Source of the DNA: Podarcis erhardii
Taxonomy: Eukaryota
Assembly: GCA_964252035.1 (NCBI GenBank)
Contig: OZ176200.1
DNA length: 64,000 nt
Strand: one strand, 5' to 3'
The notes under the pieces: model-generated
What the model was told of the DNA's origin: nothing
Databases searched by the model: none
Seen by the model: only the letters and a program-made list of their open reading frames with translations
Made by a program: the position numbers and the translations under genes
In this document: positions 1,866 through 43,556 of the stretch, piece by piece
Position numbering within the stretch: position 1 is the stretch's first letter
How the letters are laid out: every line of letters begins with the position of its first letter

Positions 1866-4800
1866 GTAAGTACATGGTGCTGTTCTAAAAGATGTACTGG
1901 TGTGGGGAGGGAGTATCTTTTTTAAGTGGTTTCATCAGCAAACAGTAAAATCACCAGCAGCAACAACAGGGACACAATACAGAGCCAGTTATTTTGCCAA
2001 TGAGTTTAATGCTTCTATTATGAATTCCTCATGACTGTGTCACCTTATTCCACACATAATGCATGCATTTAGCATCTGGAATTAACTCAGTAGAAAATTT
2101 TGGAGGCTTTTATTTTGAGTCTTATAATTTATTAAAAATTTAGCACTAATGAAAATGCAAAAATTGAACGTCTGCCAATTCCACATCAACTCCTAGCCAA
2201 TGTAGTGCAGAAGCTGTTCCAATGGGCTCTCCATATTCATTAGGAATCTAAGCCTTTGGTTGCCCTGTACACATTTGGAAATTCACTACACACAGCCAAA
2301 TGATAATAGATTGTTTGTTGGTTTTGTTTTGTGACCAAAACCCACATTTTCTGGGCAGTTTGCACTGGGCACCTTTAGCTTATGACCTTGATGTCTCCTT
2401 ACATTTCAGGTTTTGCAGAGATAGATTATTAGCAGTTCACTTGTATCTTGAAATGGAGGAAACAAAAGTTTACCAGCTACTCGAGAATGCTCAGTTTAAA
2501 GTTCCATAGCTAGGTTGTTAATAATTGCCTGGAGAAGATGGGGACCTAATGTGAAAGAATGTTTTGTATATTAATATGGCCAGTAAACGTTGTTGAGAAA
2601 CATTTAGCTGCAATATTATTGCTGCTGGTACAAAAAATCTGTAGATATATAGAAAGAGAGGATTTGTGGTATGATCCTGTGGGTCTTCACTGAGGCTTTT
2701 TATTGAGGTTGAGGTGGTTCATGTGGGAATTCTGTCAGGATAACACCTCCACAATTTGATCCTTAATGAACTAAGCCATACTGTAAACTTTGTCATGGAT
2801 CAAGTGTTGTGCTTTGCTTTTAAAATGAAGCTTTATCCGCCTAAATATAAATAACAGGGAATTGAGTTTAAGCCACAACATCTCTTTGGCTTTATAAATG
2901 CGCTTACAAAAGTAAAGGGATTTATGAAAACCAACAGATCTTGTTTGTTTGGCTAAGGAAGAAAAAAGCAAGTGTACACTTGCTCTTTCAAAATCACACT
3001 TTTGGGGGTGGGGAATCTGGCTAGTTGTCCTAGTGTTCAATTGTCCTTTTCGTTTCTTAACATCTGAGTTAGCACAGAGTGCCTCTCCATCTTCATTCTC
3101 TCAGTTACTAGCAGAGGGCTGCCTGCCTCTACCCCGCTGGAACCTATGTGCTCAGAGGAGACTGTAACTGCCAAGTGCTTAGTGGGAAATTGGAGATTTT
3201 GTTAAATCCTTTCGTTAGTTTAAAAATATTTCTATTTGTGGCGATGAGCAACTTGCCCCCACCCCCAGTCTCTTCCCTCCTAGGCCAACATTTCAGCTTA
3301 TGTTAGGTAGTGTGATCCCTGTTAAGAGTAACTCTAGCAGTGCATCTTTGGTACAGCAGCAAACTGCTAATATACTGTCATTATACTCATATGTTGCAAG
3401 GCTGTATTTATTACATTGAAAATAAGGATACAATCTCTTACTAGCTCTCATTAAAAAAAAGTAGTCGGCTTCTTATATGCAGTGAAAGAGAACGTTCCCT
3501 GTGAAGTCTCAGTGGGACTCATGGCACTCACTTTGGCTCATCTGTCTTACAGGGCTCCAAAGAGCTTTCATGCTTTAGGCACAGGGCATGTCTAGTAGAA
3601 TATTTATCTGGGGTCTTTCAACCATTGAGAATAGATTTAAGATAGATGTAGGAGGAAGGGGAAATCGCTGAAAATTACATTCCTGGTTGTTTTGGTGATG
3701 AATTCCTTCTCTCAGTCACCACTAGATACCACCCCCAGTCTTTGAACCACAGGCCCCATATCGTACAGCAGTATTAATGGTCCCTTCAGTTTTAAAAGTA
3801 ATAATTCACCATGTGATGGTGGCTGCTGTTCAATAAATCCATGCTCCTAAACTTCTTTGGATCCCAGACTGCTTCTACACTGCAGTGAGCCTGGAGAAAG
3901 GCAGATAACAGACCAATGCAATGTTGCTGTGTTGAAAACAAGACCTGCTAAACACATCTTGAAGTGGAGCACTAAAAAAGAGTGGGGGAGCTTATTTTAA
4001 TTGTAGTTATATATCCTTTTCAACAGTTACTTGGGTATTGGACATTTGGTTAGAAATGGAGAAAGAAACATCACACACAGCTTCACTGAGCTGGATAATG
4101 TGTTTCGGATAACACTTGTAATAGCAGGTACATTGCTAATAAAAAGCTAGTTCTTTGGGGTGTTTACTAGGATCTCAAATTTTGCAACTAGTGATGCGGA
4201 ACATTCTGAATTAAAATTGACAGATGCAGCCGACAGAATAGCAGTGGTTCCATTCCCTCTGCATCATGTGCCCAAATAGATCAGATGAGTTGTCAGGTCT
4301 AATCTAAAGCCCTTGGAAATTAATGGAAAAGCTTACAGACTTCTGTGGTAGTTTGGCTCAAACTCTCACTGTTTTGGGAGCATGACCTCATTATTTTGAT
4401 CACTTACAAAGAGACAATATGCTGCAGATTAAAGGCATAGTTCTTTGCTGCAGAATTCTCAAAGACATGGCAGAATAACAGCAGAACTCCCCTGCCCTGC
4501 AAATTTCACGTTCATTTTTAGTAATGACTTGTTTCAGAATGTGGTTACACCTTTCAAGTATTTTCACATTGGGGAGCCTTCACAAGGCGGTTTAATTATC
4601 TGATGAGTTTAGCTGGAAGCTTTTCCTTGTAGTGATTATTCCATCTCAAAAATGGCTCGGCAGCAGAGGAAGCTTTTAAGAGGGGACTGAGATAATGAAG
4701 GACATATGACCAGGTGTGGGCAGTGTGGGGACTGAACTGTGAGATTACCACTCTGAGGAAGGAAGATTATACAGTTTCTAGTGGTGGAGGCCAGGAGGCT

Positions 4801-27579: not shown

Positions 27580-27674
27580 CTGAAGAAGTGTGCATGCACA
27601 CGAAAGCTCATACCAAGAACTGACTTAGTTGGTCTTTAAGGTGCTACTGGAAGGAATTTGTTTTGTTTTGACTA
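27580..27674 (+). mobile_element. Solo Neptune-type PLE pLTR fragment starting at the hammerhead core
   Basis: Near-identical to the reverse complement of about 42048-42144; flanked by an 11-bp direct repeat ACTAAAAACTG (27572-27582, 27671-27681). Confidence 0.85.
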
Positions 27675-30299: not shown

Positions 30300-31548
30300 C
30301 CTTAAAGTATGGGGCTGTCTTCCACCTTTCAAGATACGAGCATTGAGACTGGAAACGTGAGCATAGCCTAGTGAAAATATGGTTCAGAGCTATGGCAGCT
30401 GCATTTGTGGTTATAGCTTCAAAGCAATGGAGATTCAGCTGGGACCTTGGAGTCAACCCTTAGTCACCATGAGGCAAACAGGCAAGTGGCTGATTACAAG
30501 CCTATTTTATTGTAAATAATGAAAAATAACATAACAATCCGTTGTTAATGCAAGCCCCTTTTAGGTTGCTGAAAGGACTGCCAGTCAACACAATTGAACA
30601 CATTATTAAATAACAGATTTCAGCCATTATACTTGCCTATGTGGGCTTATGAAGAACAAAATAATAAAATGTTAGCCAGACAACTGTAATATCTGCCAAT
30701 ATTGGCACATGATTTATTGCCTTCTGTGTATCACTATGTACCATAATACAGGCTGTCTATCCACAGTATTATTTTAAAAGCAATTGTCATGCATCCCATT
30801 ACTTTATTTATTATGTTTCTGAGAAAGCCAAAAGTTTTTAAAAGGATGTATTCATACATATCTCAAATTTAAATAGGAAAAAAATCATTAAAACATAAAC
30901 ATAAGGACACTAAAGGAGAAACCTTATAATAAGGAAAAGGATTTTGCTTAATAATACTTCGTTCAGCATTCCAGCAGTTTCTAAGCCATTTCCATTCTTC
31001 TCCAAACACATCAATTTTGTTTCTCTTCTCTAACACAAAAATATATTATGTAATTTTATTCATGATTTCTTTGCCCCATAATTTTCTATACCATTCTTTC
31101 AGAGATGGAAAAAGAAATTGTCTCCTTAGTTTTCCAGTACAGTATGTTGCAAATAAAAGTATAGCTGTAACAGTGCTCTTTTCTTTCAGGAATAGTTGTT
31201 TCAGAAAACCTTTAGGCATAATCCTAAACACACTCACAAGGGAGTAGGCCCCACTGAACACAATGTGTTATTAAACTTAATTTTTGGTTTGGAGAAATAT
31301 GAGCTTAAGTATATTGTTATATTATTAGCAGAATGTGTGACCAATAAGTTTTGTTCTTACACACATGTCCCCCAACAGTCTGCAAAACCCACCTTTCTTT
31401 CATCTTGCTTTGAACTTATTTCACTACCATTAGAGTGTTAGACAACACTGTGATAGTAATTTATAGAAATTGTCTGAGTACAAAATATTTTCACCCAAAT
31501 ATATTTCTGCAAGATTACTGACAGCTTAACTTTTAAGGTCTCCCATCA

Positions 31549-31595
<47 letters not shown>

Positions 31596-31599
<4 letters not shown>

Positions 31600-31795
31600 T
31601 TTCGTAGATTTTCACGGGTACAGGAATGCAGGTTTTGGTGTCCTCGGGTGTCTTCCCGTGTAAAAGTTGGGGTGTCTAGGCGACGTTTCGACGAGGTCTC
31701 ACTCACCAGCCTGAAGATGACGAGTGAGACCTCGTCGAAACGTCGCCTAGACACCCCAACTTTTACACGGGAAGACACCCGAGGACACCAAAACC

Positions 31796-31800
<5 letters not shown>
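31596..31800. mobile_element. Fold-back, pLTR-only Poseidon-type PLE insertion within (TA)n
   Basis: Minus-strand pLTR end 31596-31704 joined to plus-strand pLTR 31705-31800. 79-bp inverted arms (31626-31704 / 31722-31800), identical to 39583-39862. (AT)n on both sides (31552-31597, 31799-31844). Confidence 0.92.
31706..31749 (+). ncRNA. Minimal type I hammerhead ribozyme motif (PLE pLTR)
   Basis: CUGAAGA 31711-31717, stem II GACGAG/CUCGUC, then GAAACGUC; predicted cleavage after 31744. Stem I is weak. Confidence 0.65.
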
Positions 31801-31846
<46 letters not shown>

Positions 31847-33719
31847 CCGGACCCTCGGACCCTCTTCTGTCCCGATATGTAAGCCACCCTTACTCTGAAC
31901 CAACTTGCAAGGCTTCTTCAATACTTTGCTGTGCATGTTTCATTTTCTGAGGGGCAAACTAAATATGGCAGTCTTTGCCTTTAACATACAGATTTTTAAA
32001 AAATGCTATTAGCAGCTGTCTGGATGGCTGATAAATATTGGGATGGAGGACATGTGGAGGGAGAATTTACCGTACCCATTTTCTGCCTTGCAGTTACAAT
32101 GGAAATAATTTCGTGAAAACCTGTAAAGTTCCCATCGGCACTTTGGGAGCTTTCCCTTAATGCAGAGAGCACATCTGGAGAATGCTCCACATCTGCTGTG
32201 ATCCCAGTGATTTTCAGTCCCCTCCCAAGTGGATGGTTAGTACATTTTAAAAGGAATTTAAATCAGACACACATTTAACATTGCATAGTTTATCCCTGAG
32301 CAGAGGCCAATTTAGCCACACATTTGGAGGTGTAATGCCAAGGAAACTGACCAAGTGATTGAGGAGTGGTGCTCCAAAGCAAATATGGAGTGCTGCAGCC
32401 TGTGAAGATGTCCTCACTCTCTTGAGTGGAGCTGTCTTCCCCACAGAAAAAAACGGGGATGATTATACACGTAGGAGCTCTGCTTGTGGGTAGCAGCGCA
32501 TATGGTAGTCTGTCTCAGAGGGAGCTTTTTAAACTGTTGCTATTATTTCACACACTGGCAAATCCAAGTTATGCAATTCAAGTTGATGAGGACTCTTGCA
32601 TGACAAACCCACTCTTTCCCCCAAATCAGACATTTCACAATAAGGAAAGTCATTGGATGCACCGGAAAGTGGAGAATGATGATTGCTTGATGTCATGTAA
32701 CTTCCCCGTATATTAATCAAAATGAATGCTCGATAAGTAGCCAACATCTTCTAACCTCTCCACAATCTTTGTGCATATTAATAAGGATAAATGCTCAATA
32801 AACAGTTCATCTGGAAGCAACCAGAGTATTTCTAAAAGTGCAAGATGTAAGGATGGAGATAACAGGATAATAGCATTCTCAAATGATATACATAATAGAG
32901 GAGCAGCTCACAGGCGAATTTAATCCACAAGCACATTTTATATCATGCAATGAGGTATGAACATGGTTTCACTTAGAACCCCTTTGACTAATGATATGAG
33001 ATAGGGCTGTAGCTAAATACAGCTTTGTGCTACTATCATCTGGTAATGCATGGAAAACAGCTTGCCGGTTTTAGGGAGGCTTATCTTTTGGAAGAGTGAC
33101 TAATTTGCCTTTGCATAAATAGGAGTTCAAAGGAAATGAATGCTGTTTATCCAGGATTTAGGGAAGATTTTGTAAAATAGATCTAGTCCTGTGAAGCTCT
33201 AACCACCTCCAGTTCCCTAGTATCTGGGATTTTTTTTGTTTTGTATCTCTGGTCCTAAAATACAAAAACCTGAGAGAAAAGGAGATTCTGTACTAGCTTT
33301 ATACGTTGCAGAATTGTTTCAAAATAACAGAAATTGCATTATATAATAAGGTCACCAGAATTATACCTTGTTTTGTCATGTAAGATTAATTTTGATTTAT
33401 GGAAATTTGGATAAGGATAGGAGAAATCTCTTTCTAGGTAGAATAGTATTAAGACTGAACTCATTGACTTTTTTATTGTAGGAAATTTGTTTATACAGTA
33501 TGCAATCTTGTAAGTGAACTGTTGGAACACATGTTGCATCTGTGAATTACAGATTACATTTAAACTGACAGATGTGCAGTTAAACTATTTTAGCCTCATG
33601 AACAAAACTAGTCTAGTTCTAGTGTCCTACAGAACACACCATTACATTGCCTTTTAAAAATTGTTTTTATTAAAGGATTTTCATGGTTAACAAGGGTACA
33701 TACAACGTCTCTGTTTTCA

Positions 33720-34810
33720 GAGGTATGTGCCTGTAATGGTGCAGCCTCTCCAGCATTTAGGTGAGGTTCCTGGGTGTATCAGCGCCAGCTTCCGAGGTGG
33801 TAAAGGTAAAGGTAAAGGGACTCCTAACCATTAGGTCCAGTCGCAGACGACTCTGGGGTTGCAGCGCTCATCTCGCTTTATTGGCCGAGGGAGCCAGCGT
33901 ATGGCTTCCAGGTCATGTGGCCAGCATGACTTAAGCCGTTTCTGGCGAACCAGAGCAGCACACGGAAATGCTGTTTACCTTCCCGCCGGAGTGGTACCTA
34001 TTTATCTACTTGTACTTCGTGCTTTCGAACTGCTAGTTGGGCAGGAGCTGGGACCGAGCAACAGGAGCTCACTCCGTTGCTGGGATTCGAACCATCGACC
34101 TTCTGATCAGCAAGCCCTAGGCTCTGTGGTTTAACCCACAGCGCCACCCACATCCCGAGGTGCTAGGTACCATCTATAAATTAGTTTCAAAGTCAGTTCT
34201 CTTCTTTTGGTTGAGATGGACTTAAAGGGTGGTTTAGATCATAGTTTAAACAGAGTTTTAAACACAGTTTTGAAGGGTCTTGAGTAGTAGTTTGTATATT
34301 GTGGATTCCATCCCCTTGCTGTGTCCCTCTGTTGTTAGAAGTTTATCGAAGGTGTTCAGAGTCCTTTGACTGCTGGGTTATTTAAGAAGGTGTGCAGTTG
34401 GTGTTGGGTCAGCCAGGGTATACAAACTAGGGGACACCTAGTTTTCCCTAGTTTGTCTTTTATTTTTTGTGTTAGTATGGGTTTGTCATTTTTGTAGAAG
34501 TCTGTTAGGCTGTGTAAACCTTTGACTTGCCATGCTTTTGTTTGGAAGCTGTGGGCTGCATGGTGGAATAGTGGGTGGTGGCCAGGGGGATTAATGGGTT
34601 TGGGGGCAGTTTACCTGCTTTCTCCTTCCACACTTTAAGCATGGATTGTGTGAACCTGTTTAGTGTTGTGAGGATTTTCTTTAGTTTGTTTTCAAGGAAC
34701 GGATACACTGGTACTTCCAGTTGCATCTCTCTCCCTGTGCAACCATTGTTTTCTTTAAAAAAAAGCTGACAAAAATAGCTTTGTGTTAAACACTTTGGCT
34801 GGCGCATTCA
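33720..34810 (-). mobile_element. Degenerate L1-clade LINE ORF2 C-terminal fragment, split by a Sauria SINE
   Basis: With the SINE removed, the minus strand reads L*SKPPFKSISTKRRELTLKLIYRWYLAPRKLALIHPGTSPKCWRGCTITGTYL, the RWY...CWRGC signature of vertebrate L1 ORF2. ORF 34505-34807 is the upstream part. Boundaries approximate. Confidence 0.75.
33800..34154 (-). mobile_element. Full-length Sauria SINE nested in L1
   Basis: (AAAGGT)n at left, box B GGTTCGAATCC on the minus strand, 8-bp TSD CCGAGGTG (33792-33799, 34155-34162). Confidence 0.92.
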
Positions 34811-36665
34811 TAATGCTTCTTAATCATTCATAATGGTTTAAGAATTCATGCGTGCCCCACAGGTTCAGACACTTTTCCCTCTTGGATGTGAATTTTCCTC
34901 TCCCTTTCATTTTCAAAGCTAACCCATGTTACATCTGTACTGTATCAAACTGCAATTTGCAAATATGTTTCTAACCGTGGTTGCAAACTGGCTTGGCACT
35001 AACCATTGTTAAAAGTGGGTTCGTGAGCGGTGGTTTGAGCTAAACGTGGCTTTGTTCCATTAATGGCATTTAAAAGTAACTTGCTACTATTCATTCTTAG
35101 GGCAGTGTTTTGTACCGCTATACATAAGAAATTGGGCAGGCAGACTATGGTATTTAGTGAATAAGTGACATATTTGCATCTGATCTACAATTTTGGGCTG
35201 GCTTGGCAGCTATGTCAAAAAATTTAGTTGCCCACTCCCTGCCTATCATTCTCCTGCCACCTTCTTTCCATCCCTCTTCCACCCACTGGCCTTTCCCAAG
35301 GGAAAAGAGAAATGTACATGCGGTTGAGTGTACTTGAGTGCTGCTGCTTTAATGTACTTGCAGCATCTTCAGGGAGCAGCATGCAACCCTGGAGCTGGGA
35401 AGCAGTGCAGATGACAATTCACAAACTGTGATAATCCTTGCCCAGCTCTCCAGGTTGACTGACTTTAGGGTGGTGACCGAGTGGAATTGTGGGAGTCTGT
35501 AGATACCAAAAGCATTCTGTTTGGTAAGTTTCACAATGTTCTCCTAGTTTTATGAGTACTTTAAAGAGAAACTTGAGTGTTTCTTAATTACAGTTTGGGA
35601 TATTTTACAAAAAGACTGCCTAGTAGGCATTTTAAATGCCTGCTATGAGTTATTACTAGAGATACCTTCTGCATTATGAATGTTTTAATAAGCTCTTCCT
35701 GTTTTCCACATATTATGAAGTATCATATATCTCACTGCTAGGAATAATATCCAGCTAGGAGCAAATCCCATATGCTAAGAGCAAACTCATTCTCCAACTT
35801 GTGTAGCCCCCAAAAGCAAAAGAGGAAGGTATGGGCAGGCTGTGTGTTTAAAGGAGGGAGGCTAAGTCAGCTCAGTGTACCGTGCAGTGCTGGTTGACTG
35901 CTGGAGTTGGGGAATGCAAACTAATGCGGAGGGGAAATGGAAAGGACTGTTCTGGAATAGGCCATGATTGATTGGCTGGCTAGAACTCTGAACAAGAGCA
36001 CTCCACACTGCAATATTTGTGGCAGGAGTTATAAATGAATGCAAGCAAGCAGGATGACAGCCAAAGCTAGGACACTGTGAAACAGGAGGGGAGGCACCAG
36101 CATGTTCAGGAGAACCCCAATGTTAGCAAAAAATTCATAGGGACCATTCGGTCTCCACCAAACAGTTCAGTTAAGGCTGAGTATGCTTAGTGGTCACTCA
36201 TTGAGTGAGTGAATGGAAAAGTGGGTGAAACAGAATAGAGCAGCCTGGATGAGGCTATGGCTGGCTGGAATATTGTACAGAAACACTTTACAACATTTTG
36301 TTGCAGGGCCCACTTATATATATTTCAGTGGTGATGCAGTTTTGTGGTTGGAACAATTTGTGACTGCTCTTCTTCCCCCAGTTGTGGTGACAGAATTACT
36401 TTTGTGATGGTTTGCTAAATGCCATATGAATATAAGAAATAGGATTAGGTGCATACGAAGTCAGCTCTAACTAGCTCAGTTTTGTGTATAGTACACTGTC
36501 TGGTTGTGGCACTCCAGAGTTTCAGATGGGATATTCTCAGGGGTTGAACCAGGGATTTTACTAGAACCCCGAGATGCACTTACTGGAAATGTAGTGAATG
36601 AAAGCAAAGGTAAATCAAACTCTCTATGTATGTTCTGTTTCAGATTTTCCTTGTGCCTGCTGGCA

Positions 36666-36847
36666 ATGTCCATGATCTTGTCTGCCTCGGTGGTCCGTGT
36701 GAGAGATGGACTTCCTCTATCTGCTTCTACTGATTATGAGCAAAACGTTGGTGTGCAGGAGTGCCAAAAATACTTCAAAACTATTGCAAAGAGACTTTCT
36801 CAGCTTCCTGATAGATGCACACTTCATGCAGGACTGTATAACCTAAA
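36666..36847 (+). CDS. SEC22A: Vesicle-trafficking protein SEC22a, coding exon 1 (longin domain)
   Basis: Acceptor TTTCAG ends 36643, ATG at 36666, donor GTAAGT at 36848. Reads [26 protein letters not shown]..., matching recalled human SEC22A. Confidence 0.97.
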
Positions 36848-37339
36848 GTAAGTATTATTTGGGATTTTATCTTGTTTTAATCTTGTTTCATATACAACTG
36901 TTGGCTGCTATAATAGGGAGTGAAACAACTATTTGTTTTTTTTTTTGGGGGGGGAACTAGGTTAGCTTTAAGTGATGATGTATTTTCATAAATCTTAAGT
37001 ATGAAGGCATTTGTACAACTGCTTCATTCCTCATATAAGTAAGCACATAAATTGTGGTAATCCTCAGAGATCCCGTTTTGCATTCCACTGCCATGAGACA
37101 GGGCCTTTTTGGTGGCAGCATCTCAACTGTGGAACTCCCTCCCAAAGAAGGTTAGACTGGCCCCATCTCTGATATCTTTAAAACAAGAGGTTAAGACATT
37201 TTTCTTCTGTCAGTCTTCTAGTTTTAAATTTGTCTGTTCGGATCCCCATTTTTGTGGGGAGAGGAGAATCTGTTTTATGTAGCTCTTCAATGCTCCCCAG
37301 TTTTTAATTGTAATGAAATTTTAATTGTTATAAATACAG

Positions 37340-37440
37340 TAATAATAATAATAATAAAAATTTTTATTTATATCCCGCTCTCCCCAGCCAAAGCCGGGCT
37401 CAGGGTGGCTAACAACAATAAAACAGTACAACAGTACAAC
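37340..37440 (-). mobile_element. L2-type LINE 3' end with (TTA)n tail
   Basis: (TAA)n then TTTATATCCCGCTCTCCCCAGCCAAAGCCGGGCTCAG; same family as 58949-59100. Confidence 0.65.
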
Positions 37441-37582
37441 ACAACACAATTCCTTATAAAATTAATTCAAATAAATTTTGTTTTTTTGATATTTATAAAT
37501 CATTTTATAAATATATTTATATTTTTTATAAATATTTTTTATAAATATTGTTTCAGTATTGCTTAACAACAACAACAATTTG

Positions 37583-37860
37583 CATCCTGCCTATCTTACT
37601 GGGTTGTCCCAGCACTTCTGGGTGGCTTCCAACACATATAAAAACATAGGAAAACATTAAACCTTAAAGAGCTGCCTTCAGATCTCTCCTAAAAAATATA
37701 TAATTACTCATCTTCTTGACATCTGGTGGTAGGGCATTTCACAGGGTGGGAGCCACTACCGAGAACGCCCTCTTCCTGGTTCCCTGTTGCTTCACTTCTT
37801 GCAGTGAGGGAACTGCCAGAAGTCCCTCTGTGCTGGATCTCAGTGTCCAGGCTGAACCAT
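37583..37860 (-). mobile_element. L2-type LINE 3' fragment
   Basis: CTGGGTTGTCCCAGCACTTCTGGGTGGCTTCC...GGGCATTTCACAGGGTGGGAGCCACTACCGAGAACGCCC; shares sequence with 17540-17690. Confidence 0.6.
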
Positions 37861-39347
37861 GTAGGTGGATATATAAGGCATATAAGGGCAGAGTCATCAG
37901 AAGGCAAATCAAGTGATTATCTTGATATAGTGGTCTGACATAAACCCTAGTATATCATAGGCAGCCAAGCCTTGGACTACCCTTCTGGAAACAGAGATGC
38001 TTTTCCTTTGAAGTGTTTATGAAATGAATCTAATGCGGCAAAATATGCTGTGAACACACGGTGGGAGCAGTAGTGTGATGTCATAGCACATTATGCCATT
38101 TTGTTCCATTGGTTGTTTACCTTTAGTTTTTGAAGCATATCAGTTGGGACTCCACCTGCTGAGAGTGTTGGGTCACTCCTCCCTATAGTTTTTATTTCAT
38201 TTTCCTACAGACTTCAATATATTTTGTGTCTAAGACCATGAGTTTGTTGGCAGTGCTTTTTCTTTTTGTCCAATAGGTTATAGAAAAACCCAGCATGCCT
38301 TATGCACACCTAGATGGGCTATGTTTATCTGGATTAAATTACAGCAGTGTACAGCAGCCATAAAACCATGTGTATCTTTAAGCTGAAAACATAAATTTCA
38401 AGCCTTTCTCATTGCCTTCATTTTTCTTGTACCAAAACCATACTTTGGAATGGTTTATTTGAAATGAGTTTGTATGTGTGCTACAGTGTGTGTGTTTCAT
38501 GATCTTAATAATTAAGTGGGCCCTAGACCAAATGGGGAATGAATTATTTGTACGTAGATGCAAATGGAGTTGGGGAGAGAATCAATATTCACAGTTCAAA
38601 ATTAGATAATTCATATTATTATCTGATGTGTACATTTCTGGCACTGACCTTTATAAACAAACTTCCCTAAGTACTCTTGATAAATCTCTGGTGTTTAGTA
38701 TATCAGTATATCAGTCTAATTATTTTTAAAGTGTCAGATGTACAGTATGTACCTAAAATTGTCCTAGAATTATTGTTTTGAATTGCACAAGGAATGATGA
38801 ACTAATGCAGTGTTTTAACAGAATGTTTAATAAATAAAGAGTGTAAGCATATGCCAAAATTTCAATTAGATCTGGGGAGTTTTCCAGCTTCTGATGAGTT
38901 CCTTTAATGCCATCACTGAATACTGACGAAGAAGCATCATTGCTAGGGCAGGATTTCATTCTCTGGCTCATAAAGATAATTCTGAAGAGCTTTTTTGTTT
39001 TGGGTTTTGGAATGAAGATGTCCTTTTATGCACAACCAATAATTAAAACATTCAGAGGTTAAAGAGGGGAAGGCCACCTGCCCTCTTTGATCTGTTTCTT
39101 TCTTCTCACTTTAGAGAGGAAAAATCTTCATACTCTTCTGCTTTTTACTTGTGGTGGGACACACCTGGGACTTTTTCCTTTTGAAAACAATGTTACAATT
39201 TCTCATGAATATTGATGCTTTCATTACACTCAGAGCCATTTTTCTTGTTCTTACAGCTCAGAGAGCTGCTCTAGTCAAGCTGTAGATGCATGAATTTAAT
39301 TTTGAAGCATTAAACACATTTTAAAATGTTTTTGTTTTGTTTTGTAG

Positions 39348-39511
39348 TTTTATTAGTTCCTTGGGAGTGAGTTACATGATGCTCTGCACTGAAAATTACC
39401 CCAGTGTCCTGGCCTTCTGTTTCCTGGATGAGCTTCAAAAGGAGTTCATCACCACATACAACATGATGAAGACAAATACAGCTGTTAGACCATACTGTTT
39501 CATTGAGTTCG
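39348..39511 (+). CDS. SEC22A: SEC22A coding exon 2
   Basis: TAG acceptor, GTAAGG donor; reads (N)[54 protein letters not shown]; splice phases consistent. Confidence 0.97.
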
Positions 39512-39553
39512 GTAAGGAGGATTCACCACTTTCTGTAATGATGGACTTGTTTT

Positions 39554-39584
<31 letters not shown>

Positions 39585-39663
39585 GCTTTCGTAGATTTTC
39601 ACGGGTACAGGAATGCAGGTTTTGGTGTCCTCGGGTGTCTTCCCGTGTAAAAGTTGGGGTGTC

Positions 39664-39707
39664 TAGGCGACGTTTCGACGAGGTCTCACTCGTCATCTTC
39701 AGGCTGG
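39664..39707 (-). ncRNA. Minimal hammerhead ribozyme motif
   Basis: Reverse complement of 39768-39811; core spans 39669-39702. Confidence 0.65.
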
Positions 39708-39767
39708 TGCTTTCGGCTTCTTGTTACTGGAACAGAGCTCTGTTCCAGTAACAAGAAGCCGAAAGCA

Positions 39768-39811
39768 CCAGCCTGAAGATGACGAGTGAGACCTCGTCGA
39801 AACGTCGCCTA
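39768..39811 (+). ncRNA. Minimal hammerhead ribozyme motif
   Basis: CUGAAGA 39773-39779, stem II 39781-39786 / 39793-39798, GAAA 39799-39802, CGUC; predicted cleavage after 39806. Confidence 0.65.
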
Positions 39812-39857
39812 GACACCCCAACTTTTACACGGGAAGACACCCGAGGACACCAAAACC

Positions 39858-39896
<39 letters not shown>

Positions 39897-39973
39897 TTTC
39901 GTAGATTTTCACGGGTACAGGAATGCAGGTTTTGGTGTCCTCGGGTGTCTTCCCGTGTAAAAGTTGGGGTGTC

Positions 39974-40017
39974 TAGGCGACGTTTCGACGAGGTCTCACT
40001 CGTCATCTTCAGGCTGG
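39974..40017 (-). ncRNA. Minimal hammerhead ribozyme motif overlapping the PLE stop codon
   Basis: Core 39979-40012 on the minus strand (CUGAAGA...GAAACGUC); the TGA stop at 39996-39998 lies in the stem II loop. Confidence 0.7.
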
Positions 40018-41711
40018 TGCTTTCGGCTTCTTGTTACTGGAACAGAGCAGGATCTCAGTGTTTGAGTTCCTATAAATACTGTAGAGGGGGTGTGGTGTAT
40101 AGCCTCCAATGTTCTGGGCAGAGAGGAAGTTCCCAGGTTAGTGTGCCTTTTCTTCTTTTGTTCCTTAATTACTTGAGAGATATCTTGAGTGATTTCTTGA
40201 GTGATATCCTGAGTACCACTTAGGTGGGTCATTAGGTGTGGATTAGTTGTTAAAGTCTTTGTGTCTTGACCTCTTGAACTTTGTGAAGAGTTTTCCTGAG
40301 AAGATGGCTGTACTGTACTTAGTTGTGCTCTGGCTTGGCTTCGTGTATAGGGGCGAGCTGTGGTTTTGTGGCTTGTGTCAGCCAGATCTGTGTAGGGATT
40401 GCAGGGGGGTGCAGCATCCGGAGGTGCCACCATGGATTGGCTACTGGATGGTGTCTGTAATTCATCTGTGGAGAGGGTCTGGGTTTGGGTCTGGTGTGGT
40501 TGATTGGTGTTGGCGTTCTGTGTGCCTCTGGATCTGGTGTCAGTTTTTGTGGGGAGGGCTAATTTCCAGATGTCTGGCAAGCGGGATGTGTCGTCACGCT
40601 TGTTCATGTTGTGAGGGTGTTTCTCTATCTCGATGGCTTCCATGATTATTCTCTTGTGGTGATGTTCCGTGTTAAAGAGCAATTTGGAATCTGCAAAATT
40701 AATTTCGTGTCCTGTTTCTTTCATGTGTTGGAAAAGAGAGGAAGTTTTTTCTTCTTTTTTGACGGCATTCTTGTGTTCTGCGATACGTGCATTTATTCGT
40801 CTGTTTGTTTGTCCAATGTACGTGGCTGGGCAGACTTTGCAGGGTATTTCATAGATCCCTTGGTTTTCCAACTGGATTTTATCCTTGGGGTTTCTGAGGA
40901 TATTGGCTATTTTTTGGTTGGTGCAAAAGGCTGTTTTGATATTGTGTTTATGGAGGATTTTGCTAATTTTATCTGTAGTGCCCTTGATATAAGGAAGGAG
41001 GGCCATGCCATTGTTTTCTTCTGTGTCTTGGTTTTTGGGGGGTGTTTCCTTTTGGATTAGCTTCGTAATCCTGTTTTGCTGGTATCCATTGGCAATTAAC
41101 ACGTTTGAGAGATTCTGTAACTCAGTTGTCAAGTGGTCTTTGTCAGCCAGGCGTTTGGTTCTGGAGATGAGAGTCTTGGCTACGGAGTTTATTTGTGCAG
41201 GGTGGTGGTGTGATTGTGCATGTAAGTAGCGGTTGGTGTGTGTTTTTTTCCGGTAGATAGTGTGTCCTAGGGAGCCATCAGGTTTTTTGTAGATTAGGAC
41301 GTCAAGGAAGGGAAGTTGGTTGTTGGCTTCTATTTCCATAGTGAATTGTATTTTGGGGTGTAAGTTGTTGAGATGTGTGAGGAAGCTATCCAGTTTTTCC
41401 TTCCCGTGTGGCCAAATTACAAAGGTGTCGTCAACATATCTGAGCCAAAGTTTGGGTTTGTGTTCTGACTTGTCTAAAGCATTGGTTTCAAAGTGTTCCA
41501 TGTACAGGTTTGCGATGACCGGTGAGAGGGGTGATCCCATAGGTGCTCCTTCTATCTGTTTGTATCTTTGTCCATTGTGGATGAAGTACGTGTTGGTTAG
41601 GCAGTGGTTGGTCAGGTCCAAGATGTATTCGGGGGGATTGTATTTGTTTTGAATAGCTGTCAAGGCTTCATTAATGGGCACTTGTGTGAAGAGAGATACA
41701 ACATCGAAGCT
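39996..41711 (-). CDS. PLE ORF (5'-truncated): reverse transcriptase, GIY-YIG endonuclease and low-complexity C-tail
   Basis: RT motifs SFDVVSLFT, GAPMGSPLSP, LRYVDD, LPFLDV; PLE thumb YRKKTHTNRYL; GIY-YIG GIYEIPCKVCPATYIGQT...RIAEH. The ORF-track start MWLKQ lies in flanking DNA, so there is no real start codon. Confidence 0.93.
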   Translation of the reverse strand, partial: SFDVVSLFTQVPINEALTAIQNKYNPPEYILDLTNHCLTNTYFIHNGQRYKQIEGAPMGSPLSPVIANLYMEHFETNALDKSEHKPKLWLRYVDDTFVIWPHGKEKLDSFLTHLNNLHPKIQFTMEIEANNQLPFLDVLIYKKPDGSLGHTIYRKKTHTNRYLHAQSHHHPAQINSVAKTLISRTKRLADKDHLTTELQNLSNVLIANGYQQNRITKLIQKETPPKNQDTEENNGMALLPYIKGTTDKISKILHKHNIKTAFCTNQKIANILRNPKDKIQLENQGIYEIPCKVCPATYIGQTNRRINARIAEHKNAVKKEEKTSSLFQHMKETGHEINFADSKLLFNTEHHHKRIIMEAIEIEKHPHNMNKRDDTSRLPDIWKLALPTKTDTRSRGTQNANTNQPHQTQTQTLSTDELQTPSSSQSMVAPPDAAPPCNPYTDLADTSHKTTARPYTRSQARAQLSTVQPSSQENSSQSSRGQDTKTLTTNPHLMTHLSGTQDITQEITQDISQVIKEQKKKRHTNLGTSSLPRTLEAIHHTPSTVFIGTQTLRSCSVPVTRSRKHQPEDDE

Positions 41712-42110
41712 CTGTTTGAGCCACAAACCTTAGTGTGATATATAGCCCATTCTTCCAGCACCTTACAAAAAAAGAGAGCTTTCACCTGTCTCACCTCTCC
41801 TCCCCCTGTGTGCTGTGCTGGGGATTCACCAATTTCTTAGATTCCATTTTTTTTTTTATAATATTTTTATTGAATTTATGAAATACAGAAAAAAAAGAAT
41901 AAAAGACAGATATAACCAATTTCTTAGATTCCAGATGCCCTAAGAATATGTCGAAAATGAAGAAGCCTGTGGGCTTTCCCCTTTAAGCACGTATTTTGCT
42001 CTTACATATGTATAGTCCCAGTTACAGATAGGTAGCCGTGTTGGTCTGCCATAGTCAAAACAAAAAATTCCTTCCAGTAGCACCTTAAAGACCAACTAAG
42101 TTAGTTCTAG

Positions 42111-42148
42111 GTATGAGCTTTCGTGTGCATGCACACTTCTTCAGATAC
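42111..42148 (-). ncRNA. Minimal type I hammerhead ribozyme (Neptune-type pLTR, inverted copy)
   Basis: GUAU-CUGAAGA-A-GUGUG(CAUG)CACAC-GAAAGCUC-AUAC: 4-bp stem I, 5-bp stem II, complete core. Confidence 0.8.
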
Positions 42149-42316
42149 ACTGAAACAGAAGTCACCAGACCCTTCTATATAGTGAGAAGGTGGGGAGGGG
42201 TATTACTCAGAAGGGTGGTGGGAATGGGTGATTGGCAGATAGCTGTGATGAGCCTGTTGATGACTCTTAACGACTGCAATAGGTCTTACAGGAAAAAGCA
42301 AGGGGTGAGAAGGTGA

Positions 42317-42712
42317 CACATACACCCGGACAACACCATTACTGGCCCCAACAACATCACACATACCATCTCGGGACTATTTAATTGCTCATTGTCTAAC
42401 ATTGTGTATGCCATCAAATGCCAACAGTGTCCTTCAGCTCTCTATATTGGACAAACAGGCCAAACCTTACGCCAAAGGATAAACGGACATAAATCTGACA
42501 TCAGGAATCACAAGACTGAGAAACCAGTAGGAGAACACTTCAATCTCCCAGGACATTCTATACAAGGTCTCAAAGTAGCTGTTCTATTACAAAGGAATTT
42601 CAGAAATAGACTGGAAAGAGAAGCTGCTGAATTGCAACTTATTACCAAACTTAAAACCATGGAGAAACCTGGTCTGAACAAAGACATTGGATTCTTATCT
42701 CATTATACATGA
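42317..42712 (+). CDS. PLE GIY-YIG endonuclease C-terminal fragment (no start codon)
   Basis: Open frame HIHPDNTITGPNNITHTISGLFNCSLSNIVYAIKCQQCPSALYIGQTGQTLRQRINGH...ELQLITKL...GLNKD; the NCxxxNIVY context is recalled as Neptune-like. Confidence 0.88.
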   Translation, partial: HIHPDNTITGPNNITHTISGLFNCSLSNIVYAIKCQQCPSALYIGQTGQTLRQRINGHKSDIRNHKTEKPVGEHFNLPGHSIQGLKVAVLLQRNFRNRLEREAAELQLITKLKTMEKPGLNKDIGFLSHYT

Positions 42713-42890
42713 CAAAGCCATTTTTCACCTTCTCACCCCTTGCTTTTTCCTGTAAGACCTATTGCAGTCGTTAAGAGTCGTCAACAGGCTCATCACAGCT
42801 ATCTGCCAATCACCCATTCCCACCACCCTTCTGAGTAATACCCCTCCCCACCTTCTCACTATATAGAAGGGTCTGGTGACTTCTGTTTCA

Positions 42891-42932
42891 GTGTATCTGA
42901 AGAAGTGTGCATGCACACGAAAGCTCATATGT
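42891..42932 (+). ncRNA. Minimal type I hammerhead ribozyme at the element 3' end
   Basis: CUGAAGA 42897-42903, stem II 42905-42909 / 42914-42918, GAAA 42919-42922, GCUC; predicted cleavage after C42926. Confidence 0.8.
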
Positions 42933-43361
42933 ATAGTCGTATGCTTTTGTTGGGAAAGAAAGTTCATCATTATGGATGCTGTTAATTCTCATATTATGTG
43001 TGTCGAAGTAAAACAGGCTTGTTTTATTTTGTAAGAATATATTCTGAATTGCATGAAAAGCTAAACAAAATGCAATTCATTAATTATATTAGCCCTACTT
43101 TCAGGCTTGTCAATGCATGAGTCATTAGTTTATTTATAATTAGATTCCTAGCGCTTAATTTTTTGGTGCTGCAAAATTAATTAGCCCATGATATATTAGT
43201 TATAAAGTAGCAACAATATTAAAACCTTCCACAATGGATGTAAGAATTCCAAATAATGAATTTAAATGTGTCTCAGAGACTTATATTGCCCATAAAGCCA
43301 TGGGGTCTCAGATGATTTTATTAACATATGTCTAAGGGGGTTTTGTTTTAATTTTACACAG

Positions 43362-43556
43362 ATAATTTCATTCAGAGAACCAAGCAGAGATATAACAACC
43401 CACGGTCTCTGTCGACAAAGATAAACCTTGCTGACATGCAGACGGAAATCAGGCTGAGACCACCTTATCAAATTTCCTTGTCTGAATTGGGTTCAGCCAA
43501 TGGGTATCCACATGTACCTCTTCCAGAATACAAAGGTACTGGGAAAATATCTACAG
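43362..43556 (+). CDS. SEC22A: SEC22A coding exon 3
   Basis: CAG acceptor, GTGAGT donor; reads (D)[47 protein letters not shown]...KIST. Confidence 0.97.

Follow-up and report, generated by a model that had tools for sequence, protein, structure and literature searches.

PAc, a Poseidon-type Penelope-like element (PLE) of Anolis carolinensis, cuts and extends both DNA strands, with a preference for AT-rich targets (Frangieh 2024, PMC11167929). Its reverse transcription begins at two internal sites, and the interval between them forms an optional tail (PMC11167929). The starts lie at +111-118 and the hammerhead cut 26 bp past the start codon (PMC11167929). In vitro, the start site of PAc was the same for both strands and was not homologous to the target (PMC11167929). 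Features reported for PLEs as a class include an inverted copy truncated at its 5' end, a tail of 30-40 bp on just one end and a bias to microsatellites and (TA)n (Craig 2021, PMC8557442). In Naiads, where the (TA)n preference was noted, it was tentatively tied to an extra CxxC upstream of GIY-YIG (PMC8557442). Animal non-LTR retrozymes are short, hammerhead-bearing and related to PLE terminal repeats, and they are found as direct tandem monomers with circular RNA (Cervera & de la Pena 2020, PMC7229834; Li et al. 2026 preprint).

Two miniature PLE units are described here, both of which sit inside an intron of a gene of the lizard Podarcis erhardii, within a window of 64,000 nt (the whole stretch of DNA that was analysed). 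Their layout, with mirror arms, a 30-nt offset and an AT-rich site, is already known for the PLE class, and they do not represent a new kind of element.

Anatomy of the two inverted units

Element positions were numbered backwards from the 3' end, with -1 as the last nucleotide of ...CGAAAGCAT, and the arms were compared with the adjoining RT/GIY-YIG copy (39893-41712, minus strand) as reference (Table 1). The initial annotation had placed head-to-head, terminus-only insertions between (TA)n tracts at 31596-31800 (unit 1) and 39583-39862 (unit 2), and both were present. The arms of both units, 97-156 nt in length, were built solely from the last 109-156 nt of the element, and its last 156 nt contain 10 CpGs. 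The claim that the shared bases carry no difference at all held for each of the four arms. It had also been observed correctly that one arm is 30 nt longer and that GCAT leads into (AT)n at each outer end. The 30 extra terminal nucleotides belong to the minus-strand arm in both units, and GCAT occurs in the last 200 nt of the element only at -34..-31 and -4..-1.

In unit 1, the arms were joined with a 1-nt overlap (C) at 31704, giving the junction -109/-127. The 17-nt spacer proposed at this place is actually element sequence, since the sense arm runs to -127 and the antisense arm only to -109, which leaves the former extending 18 nt beyond the latter. In unit 2, the arms overlap by 2 nt (GC) with the junction -156/-156, and this makes a perfect palindrome with no spacer. 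The internal junctions differ and the two loci have unrelated flanks, so the units occupy separate insertion sites and were rightly taken for separate events. An origin by successive independent insertions in opposite orientation was rejected, with the arms overlapping by 1-2 nt and no target sequence between them.

Table 1. Features of the two units and the neighbouring PLE copies (positions in the window)
Feature	Position	Strand	Remarks
(AT)23 left of unit 1	31552-31597		final AT common to tract and element end
Unit 1 antisense arm	31596-31704	-	element -1..-109; 100% identity to reference
30-nt tail in unit 1 antisense arm	31596-31625	-
Unit 1 sense arm	31704-31800	+	element -127..-31, without tail; 100% identity to reference
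Complete hammerhead-like core, unit 1 sense arm	31711-31744	+
(AT)23 right of unit 1	31799-31844		length equal to left tract
TA tract left of unit 2, 23 nt	39562-39584
Unit 2 antisense arm	39583-39738	-	element -1..-156; 100% identity to reference
30-nt tail in unit 2 antisense arm	39583-39612	-
Hammerhead-like core, unit 2 antisense arm	39669-39702	-
Unit 2 sense arm	39737-39862	+	element -156..-31, without tail; 100% identity to reference
Hammerhead-like core, unit 2 sense arm	39773-39806	+
(TA)17 between unit 2 and third copy	39861-39894
Third copy, 5'-truncated PLE, 1,820 nt	39893-41712	-	RT C-terminal part, GIY-YIG and tail
30-nt tail of third copy	39893-39922	-
Hammerhead-like core of third copy	39979-40012	-
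Second-family PLE unit	42018-42925	+	sense GIY-YIG-bearing copy joined to inverted arm

Identity of the element and its hammerhead-like core

The third copy, which lies across the (TA)17 from unit 2, begins where the span of the initial annotation ended and was missed there. Its truncation point at 41712 was set by reads of other copies continuing beyond it (563 + 487, one consensus). The ORF at 39996-41726 on the minus strand contained RVT_1 above the Pfam cut-off (E 2.4e-11) and a weak GIY-YIG match (E 4.8e-4, 20.8 bits versus a Pfam cut-off of 22.6). The closest relative of the element protein was a Podarcis muralis protein with 93% identity. A total of 1,360 homologues were found, mostly with PF00078 and PLE-associated families, and the matches from Anolis had only ~48% identity. 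Judged from its sequence, the element is a young Penelope/Poseidon-type PLE, whose single ORF would encode an RT followed by a C-terminal GIY-YIG nuclease. No extra CxxC motif upstream of GIY-YIG was visible in this ORF on inspection by eye.

The window contains neither a full-length nor a tandem copy of the element, and we infer how far the pLTR extends and where the ORF starts. An AUG at -114 lies inside the hammerhead box; when numbered from it, the element end (-1) becomes +114 and the hammerhead is predicted to cut after +28. The 38-aa peptide from this AUG matched the N-termini of related PLE proteins no better than shuffles did, so the equation of the terminus with the ORF start is drawn solely from positional analogy with the Anolis element. 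The units had been called non-coding, but the long ORF of the element ends at -104 and the arms thus take in coding sequence.

The hammerhead-like core is located at element -120..-87. By inspection, it is composed of CUGAAGA, one bulged U, a 6-bp helix II, GAAACGUC with loopless ACGU, and a 2-bp helix I, and this motif fits a published atypical PLE hammerhead variant (PMC4209133). No hammerhead was returned by Rfam for 31000-43500 (E<=1) or for 39890-40320 (E<=10); the miRNA-precursor matches in these scans were discarded as spurious, due to the long hairpins. The description of the units as ribozyme-bearing therefore stands at the motif level only and has no Rfam hammerhead match behind it, and in unit 1 it applies to one complete core, the core in the antisense arm being truncated. 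The RNA fold of the terminal 158 nt was of ordinary stability (z = -0.13), and no structural account of the -31 site is claimed.

Origin of the units and abundance of the family

Each unit very probably arose dead on arrival, from a single attempt of the young Penelope/Poseidon-type PLE to integrate at an AT-rich (TA)n site. The element protein would cut both DNA strands, and each freed 3' end would prime reverse transcription near the 3' end of the element RNA, with the start sites fixed at -1 and -31 and the intervening 30 nt corresponding to the known tail. The head-to-head meeting and joining, with an overlap of 1-2 nt, may then take place between a pair of short cDNAs or follow the jump of one cDNA onto the other as template. 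In the product, the two 3'-terminal arms would be inverted, each with its 3' end facing out to (TA)n, and only one of them would bear the tail. The literature supplied three parts of this scheme, namely that both strands are cleaved and extended, that there are two internal start sites and that AT-rich DNA is preferred for cleavage; the order of the steps and the mode of arm joining are what we infer. The anatomy, sequence identity, abundance, genome-wide -31/(TA)n end and 5'-truncation gradient were observed directly.

In this layout, the units are a miniature form of the usual PLE arrangement, i.e. a main copy plus an inverted 5'-truncated copy, and one option of the initial annotation, a stereotyped abortive product, agrees with ordinary PLE integration. 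The 30-nt offset between the arms equals the published PLE tail between two start sites (PMC11167929; PMC8557442). AT microhomology, which had been offered as the cause, is doubtful and not needed, as the only PLE assayed in vitro starts at a site that lacks homology to the DNA it cuts; it might still act here since both start sites read GCAT.

The equal arm ends at -156 in unit 2 would be a coincidence under two independent cDNAs, and a template jump or copy-back fits better. Exactly one tail per unit is not predicted by plain independent priming, and this speaks against the explanation preferred here. The units might record a coordinated two-protomer reaction, in which a dimeric PLE particle starts at -1 and -31 and leaves one tail per event. 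One staggered cut would then expose the entire (TA)n as two 3' overhangs, and the two (AT)23 tracts bordering unit 1, alike in length, would be a 46-bp target duplication. This reading goes further than the in vitro result of no strand difference, and we hold it to be rather unlikely. All five 3' ends of the PLE in the window adjoin (TA)n. As all four (TA)>=6 tracts in the 64 kb touch PLE 3' ends and the sole 5' end has no tract, a weaker variant is that, at each 3' end, the telomerase-related RT synthesised or lengthened part of the tract.

The family was followed in raw-read runs X24 and X23, from two related organisms other than the assembled one (~1x), and in contigs of X15 and X1. The element had been thought recently active, and the family indeed proved young and highly repeated, with ~2,000-4,000 copy equivalents in the two related organisms (reads). 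Read depth over the 3' part of the element was ~2,100-2,460 in X24 and 3,500-3,900 in X23, with flanks at ~1. Depth dropped from ~2,400 to ~600 toward the 5' side, which formed a 5'-truncation gradient. Two fixed termini 30 nt apart, as initially proposed, were found at -1 and -31, with (AT)n at -31 in hundreds of reads and ~19 contigs from four runs. Immediately before 39613 and 39923 (both equal to -31), (AT)n was seen in 161+329 reads of X24 and 380+722 reads of X23, together with 10 contigs of X15 and 9 of X1. Single contigs in X15 and X1 had additional joints between arm positions. The proportion of tail-less ends (~1/4-1/3) is rough and was not relied on, with TA tracts masked and multi-mapping reads split.

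These depths bear on the suggestion that the hairpin units form a non-autonomous, retrozyme- or SINE-like family, whose members would be transcribed whole and copied by the PLE machinery. The units do contain the hammerhead-like core and the reverse-transcription start region, and a 2026 preprint derives animal retrozymes from PLE pLTRs (10.64898/2026.07.22.740005). However, their junctions and arm lengths differ, so neither unit was copied from the other and they do not go back to one master, and the unit sequence equals that of the adjoining autonomous-type copy. The summed depth of the terminal 156 nt was ~2,500-2,700 versus 2,100-2,460 for the interior in X24, and similar in X23. Since this excess is 10-20% at most in the two organisms, no amplified hairpin class is present, and the reads flag no favoured internal start or end. 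A non-autonomous class is thus very improbable.

Palindromic tracts that are long and AT-rich break easily and favour repair by fold-back. A simple 5'-truncated insertion could have been inverted-duplicated later, when the cruciform-prone (TA)n underwent template switching during replication or repair of a break. Both units lie within (TA)n and the tracts of unit 1 are equal in length, which would fit such a rearrangement. Copy-back, however, would include the tail, whereas the second arm always ends at -31, a genome-wide terminus. The same layout is seen across PLEs generally, and also in the neighbouring unit of a second PLE family, whose outer ends are unequal, the inverted arm's being ~94 nt longer. 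That unit lies outside any microsatellite and is bounded by a clean AT-rich target duplication of 13 bp, CATATGTATAGTC (42005-42017 and 42926-42938), and we give a rearrangement after insertion only a slight chance.

Palindromes could also be produced in the assembly from mis-joined or hairpin-chimeric long reads at (TA)n, and PLE tandem and inverted structures are known to disrupt assemblies (PMC8557442). Unit 2 is a perfect palindrome without a spacer, and independent contigs break off in the TA tracts flanking units 1 and 2, short of the central junctions, so the junctions here come from one assembly. Against an artefact, the units are asymmetric, with the 30-nt tail one-sided and the arms of unit 1 offset by 18 nt, and they lie between differing unique flanks, which would not be expected from fold-back reads. 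The -31/(AT)n junction was found in four independent runs, and the layout is the signature of the PLE class. Moreover, the annotated Podarcis muralis protein P0001 begins with 37 aa of the element's antisense translation, which implies a head-to-head junction at another locus and probably in another assembly. An assembly artefact is therefore highly unlikely.

Taken as abortive products of ordinary PLE integration, the units are a natural counterpart of the test-tube results, with both strands primed and two fixed start sites. Given the youth of the family and its thousands of copies, the lizard genome could be mined for the rules of PLE integration in vivo, such as which end receives the tail, the length of the target duplication and whether (TA)n pre-exists. 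If the coordinated two-protomer reaction is true, the origin of the PLE tail and inverted repeats could be tested with genome data only. In annotation, perfect palindromes of this sort beside a splice donor are a source of hairpin RNA and of assembly trouble.

Comparison with known systems

Unlike retrozymes, each unit is one inverted pair with a junction of its own, and no excess in copy number was seen. In L1 twin priming, the second target strand reportedly primes as well (Ostertag & Kazazian 2001), and an inverted 5' segment is joined by microhomology. Priming by the second target strand would be shared with the units, but the segments in L1 come from different parts of one RNA, whereas both arms here span one terminal sequence, which would call for two templates or for a jump from one cDNA to the other.

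The units share the general PLE architecture (Evgen'ev & Arkhipova 2005; Arkhipova 2006; PMC8557442), namely strong 5' truncation, an abutting inverted copy, a one-ended tail, a microsatellite or (TA)n bias and a hammerhead-like motif in the terminal repeat. They differ from usual PLE insertions in that both arms are only 97-156 nt and nothing but the terminus remains.

The element here belongs to a different family from PAc. Compared with PAc, the lizard units are flanked by true (TA)n tracts and not merely ATT sites, both start sites read GCAT so that a 2-nt overlap with the target is possible, and each natural unit has exactly one tail, while PAc in vitro had no strand difference. As in PAc, an RT is combined with a C-terminal GIY-YIG, the target is AT-rich, and two start sites ~30 nt apart give an optional tail. 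The AUG is spanned by the hammerhead in PAc and by the hammerhead-like core here, and across the two elements the cut falls about 26-28 nt and the start about 111-118 nt past it (predicted at +28 and +114 here). PAc primes both strands, and this would yield head-to-head products as found in these units.

Anatomy of the hairpin units

Arm positions were counted back from the 3' end of the element, where ...CGAAAGCAT ends at -1. The longest copy (39893-41712) served as the reference for all pieces, its sense strand being the minus strand of the window. Reading of both loci in this way confirmed the layout of the initial annotation, two head-to-head pairs of 3'-terminal arms of a Penelope-like element (PLE) bordered by TA tracts. 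All arms were 100% identical to the long copy, and the flanks of the two loci were unrelated.

Features of the two units, the third copy and the second PLE family (arm positions relative to the element 3' end)
Feature	Coordinates	Strand	Remarks
Unit 1, left tract	31552-31597		(AT)23
Unit 1, antisense arm	31596-31704	-	-1 to -109
Unit 1, sense arm	31704-31800	+	-127 to -31
Unit 1, right tract	31799-31844		(AT)23
Unit 2, left tract	39562-39584		TA
Unit 2, antisense arm	39583-39738	-	-1 to -156
Unit 2, sense arm	39737-39862	+	-156 to -31
Tract right of unit 2	39861-39894		(TA)17
Third copy	39893-41712	-	1,820 nt; starts directly after (TA)17
Second PLE family, unit	42018-42925		sense GIY-YIG fragment and inverted arm; with duplication 42005-42938
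Second PLE family, fragment	27580-27674

The arms overlapped by 1 nt (C) in unit 1 and by 2 nt (GC) in unit 2, which is a spacerless palindrome; with these different internal junctions the two insertions are separate events, as had been proposed. The supposed 17-nt spacer of unit 1 is element sequence, its sense arm extending 18 nt further. The units had also been called non-coding, but the element ORF stops at -104, so that the coding sequence reaches into the arms. Both tracts of unit 1 are exactly 46 nt long, and those of locus 2 are 23 and 34 nt; the equality in unit 1 may be due to chance or to duplication of the whole microsatellite as a 46-bp target. An apparent host exon (39400-39512, +) ends 72 nt before unit 2 and is followed by GT, and the palindrome with one hammerhead-like core lies in the sense of the host gene's intron.

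Third copy and hammerhead-like core

The third copy, overlooked in the initial annotation, is oriented as the antisense arms and carries the same 30-nt extension (the tail, between -31 and -1). In its open frame of 576 codons Pfam revealed RVT_1, with GIY-YIG slightly below the curated cut-off. With 93% identity, an 'uncharacterized protein' of Podarcis muralis was the best relative, and more than 1,000 animal RT/GIY-YIG proteins came next. The element is a PLE with C-terminal endonuclease, in the genome of a lacertid-type lizard. Reads of other copies continue beyond 41712 with one consensus (563 and 487 reads), therefore the third copy is 5'-truncated at 41712, and the initial 14 nt of its nominal ORF are flank. 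Past GIY-YIG no stop interrupts the frame over about 240 low-complexity codons (39996-40650, -) until the one at -104, 8 nt beyond an AUG (-114 to -112); this long C-terminal extension may be translated or may be an open pseudo-LTR. In the Podarcis muralis relative (P0001, LOC144326219), residues 1-37 are an antisense translation of the same element (41500-41610, +). What follows in the protein is sense PLE, and a head-to-head PLE junction seems to lie within this gene model.

A hammerhead-like core was found at -120 to -87, composed of CUGAAGA, one bulged U, a 6-bp helix II and GAAACGUC with a loopless ACGU, and only 2 bp of helix I were found. These traits are those published for atypical PLE mini-hammerheads (PMC4209133). 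None of the Rfam models detected the core, therefore the description of the units as ribozyme-bearing is valid at the motif level only; of the cores in unit 1, one is complete and one truncated. The AUG at -114 lies inside the hammerhead box. Counted from it, the predicted hammerhead cut comes after +28, the -1 end corresponds to +114, and the second site, -31, is 30 nt upstream of -1, immediately past an AC-rich hairpin. By analogy only, the terminus may encode the ORF start; the 38-aa peptide from this AUG had no significant similarity to the N-termini of relatives.

Termini and copy number across the family

Two contig runs (X15, X1) and two raw-read runs from related organisms at about 1x coverage (X24, X23) were aligned to 39100-41900. 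Depth on the 3' part of the element was about 2,100-2,460 (X24) and 3,500-3,900 (X23), against about 1 in unique flanks, and dropped to about 600 close to 41.7 kb, a profile that points to thousands of copies, 5'-truncated in the usual graded manner. Among the loose ends, support was strongest for (AT)n immediately before 39613 and 39923, the -31 positions of the two antisense copies (161+329 reads in X24, 380+722 in X23, 10 contigs in X15 and 9 in X1); this scoring covers the tail-less end, the tail-bearing end being masked since the reference has TA there. Thus the tail-less end on (TA)n is a recurrent terminus of the family, beyond these loci.

The summed depth of the terminal 156 nt exceeded that of the interior by at most 10-20%, and the alignment flagged no position inside the element as a preferred start or end; therefore the hairpin units are not an amplified class. 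A non-autonomous family, one of the two options first offered, is very improbable in view of the differing junctions and the missing depth excess. Given their different junctions, the units are independent abortive products, the other option. The original observation stood and its interpretation was partly right. Single contigs show other arm-to-arm joints, giving a hint of further units with different junctions.

At both loci the contigs end inside the TA tracts, and the central junctions are thus read from the assembly alone. An assembly artefact is nevertheless hardly to be expected, since the units are asymmetric and lie between unique flanks, the -31/TA junction was seen in four runs, and the Podarcis muralis gene model seems to contain a head-to-head junction. 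One X1 contig of unique depth from organism A (record 8, 3,280 nt) covers the right flank at 41712-41846 and stops matching at 41712, before the third copy, with 143 further letters placed elsewhere; this copy may be missing from organism A, which would be an insertion difference between organisms.

Proposed mechanism and known PLEs

In each unit of the window a single arm is longer than its partner, also in the unit of the second PLE family, whose inverted arms (205-210 nt) are 99% complementary, the inverted arm being about 94 nt longer at the outer end, with a 13-bp AT-rich target duplication (CATATGTATAGTC). All four tracts of (TA)>=6 in the 64-kb window touch 3' ends of the family of unit 1, unit 2 and the third copy, and the sole 5' end (41712) adjoins unique sequence without TA; the tracts may have been there beforehand, or insertion may have made or lengthened them. 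Together with the one longer arm and the equal tracts of unit 1, this allows a coordinated-dimer model with long target duplication, or a tract made at insertion. The (TA)17 points to repeated insertion, with the TA tract at the 3' end of an earlier copy as the target; a single complex event producing unit 2 and the third copy is a possible alternative.

From the observed anatomy and genome-wide termini, with enzymology from the literature, a series of three steps is the most economical explanation. A PLE particle would cleave both strands within the AT-rich tract, and each 3' end would prime cDNA close to the RNA 3' end, one at -1 and the other at -31. In the last, inferred step the two very short cDNAs would be linked head to head through an overlap of 1-2 nt, with an end-to-end template jump as the probable route. 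Two independent cDNAs of the same length would hardly yield the spacerless palindrome seen in unit 2. Fold-back repair at (TA)n after insertion would copy the tail too, and has very little probability.

PLE clades have in common a strong 5' truncation, a main copy adjoined by an inverted 5'-truncated one, a 'tail' of 30-40 bp that is often confined to one end, and a bias to microsatellites; a preference for (TA)n as such is reported for Naiads (Craig et al. 2021, PMC8557442). The purified Poseidon PLE of Anolis carolinensis cleaved and extended both DNA strands, favoured AT-rich cleavage sites and initiated reverse transcription at two positions inside the RNA that share no homology with the target; the stretch between these positions is the tail (Frangieh et al. 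2024, PMC11167929). The element described here has the same geometry, with a predicted cut after +28 and the -1 end at +114; the published values are 26 bp past the start codon for the cut and +111-118 for the starts (PMC11167929). The units are an already described PLE signature, here unusually small and clean.
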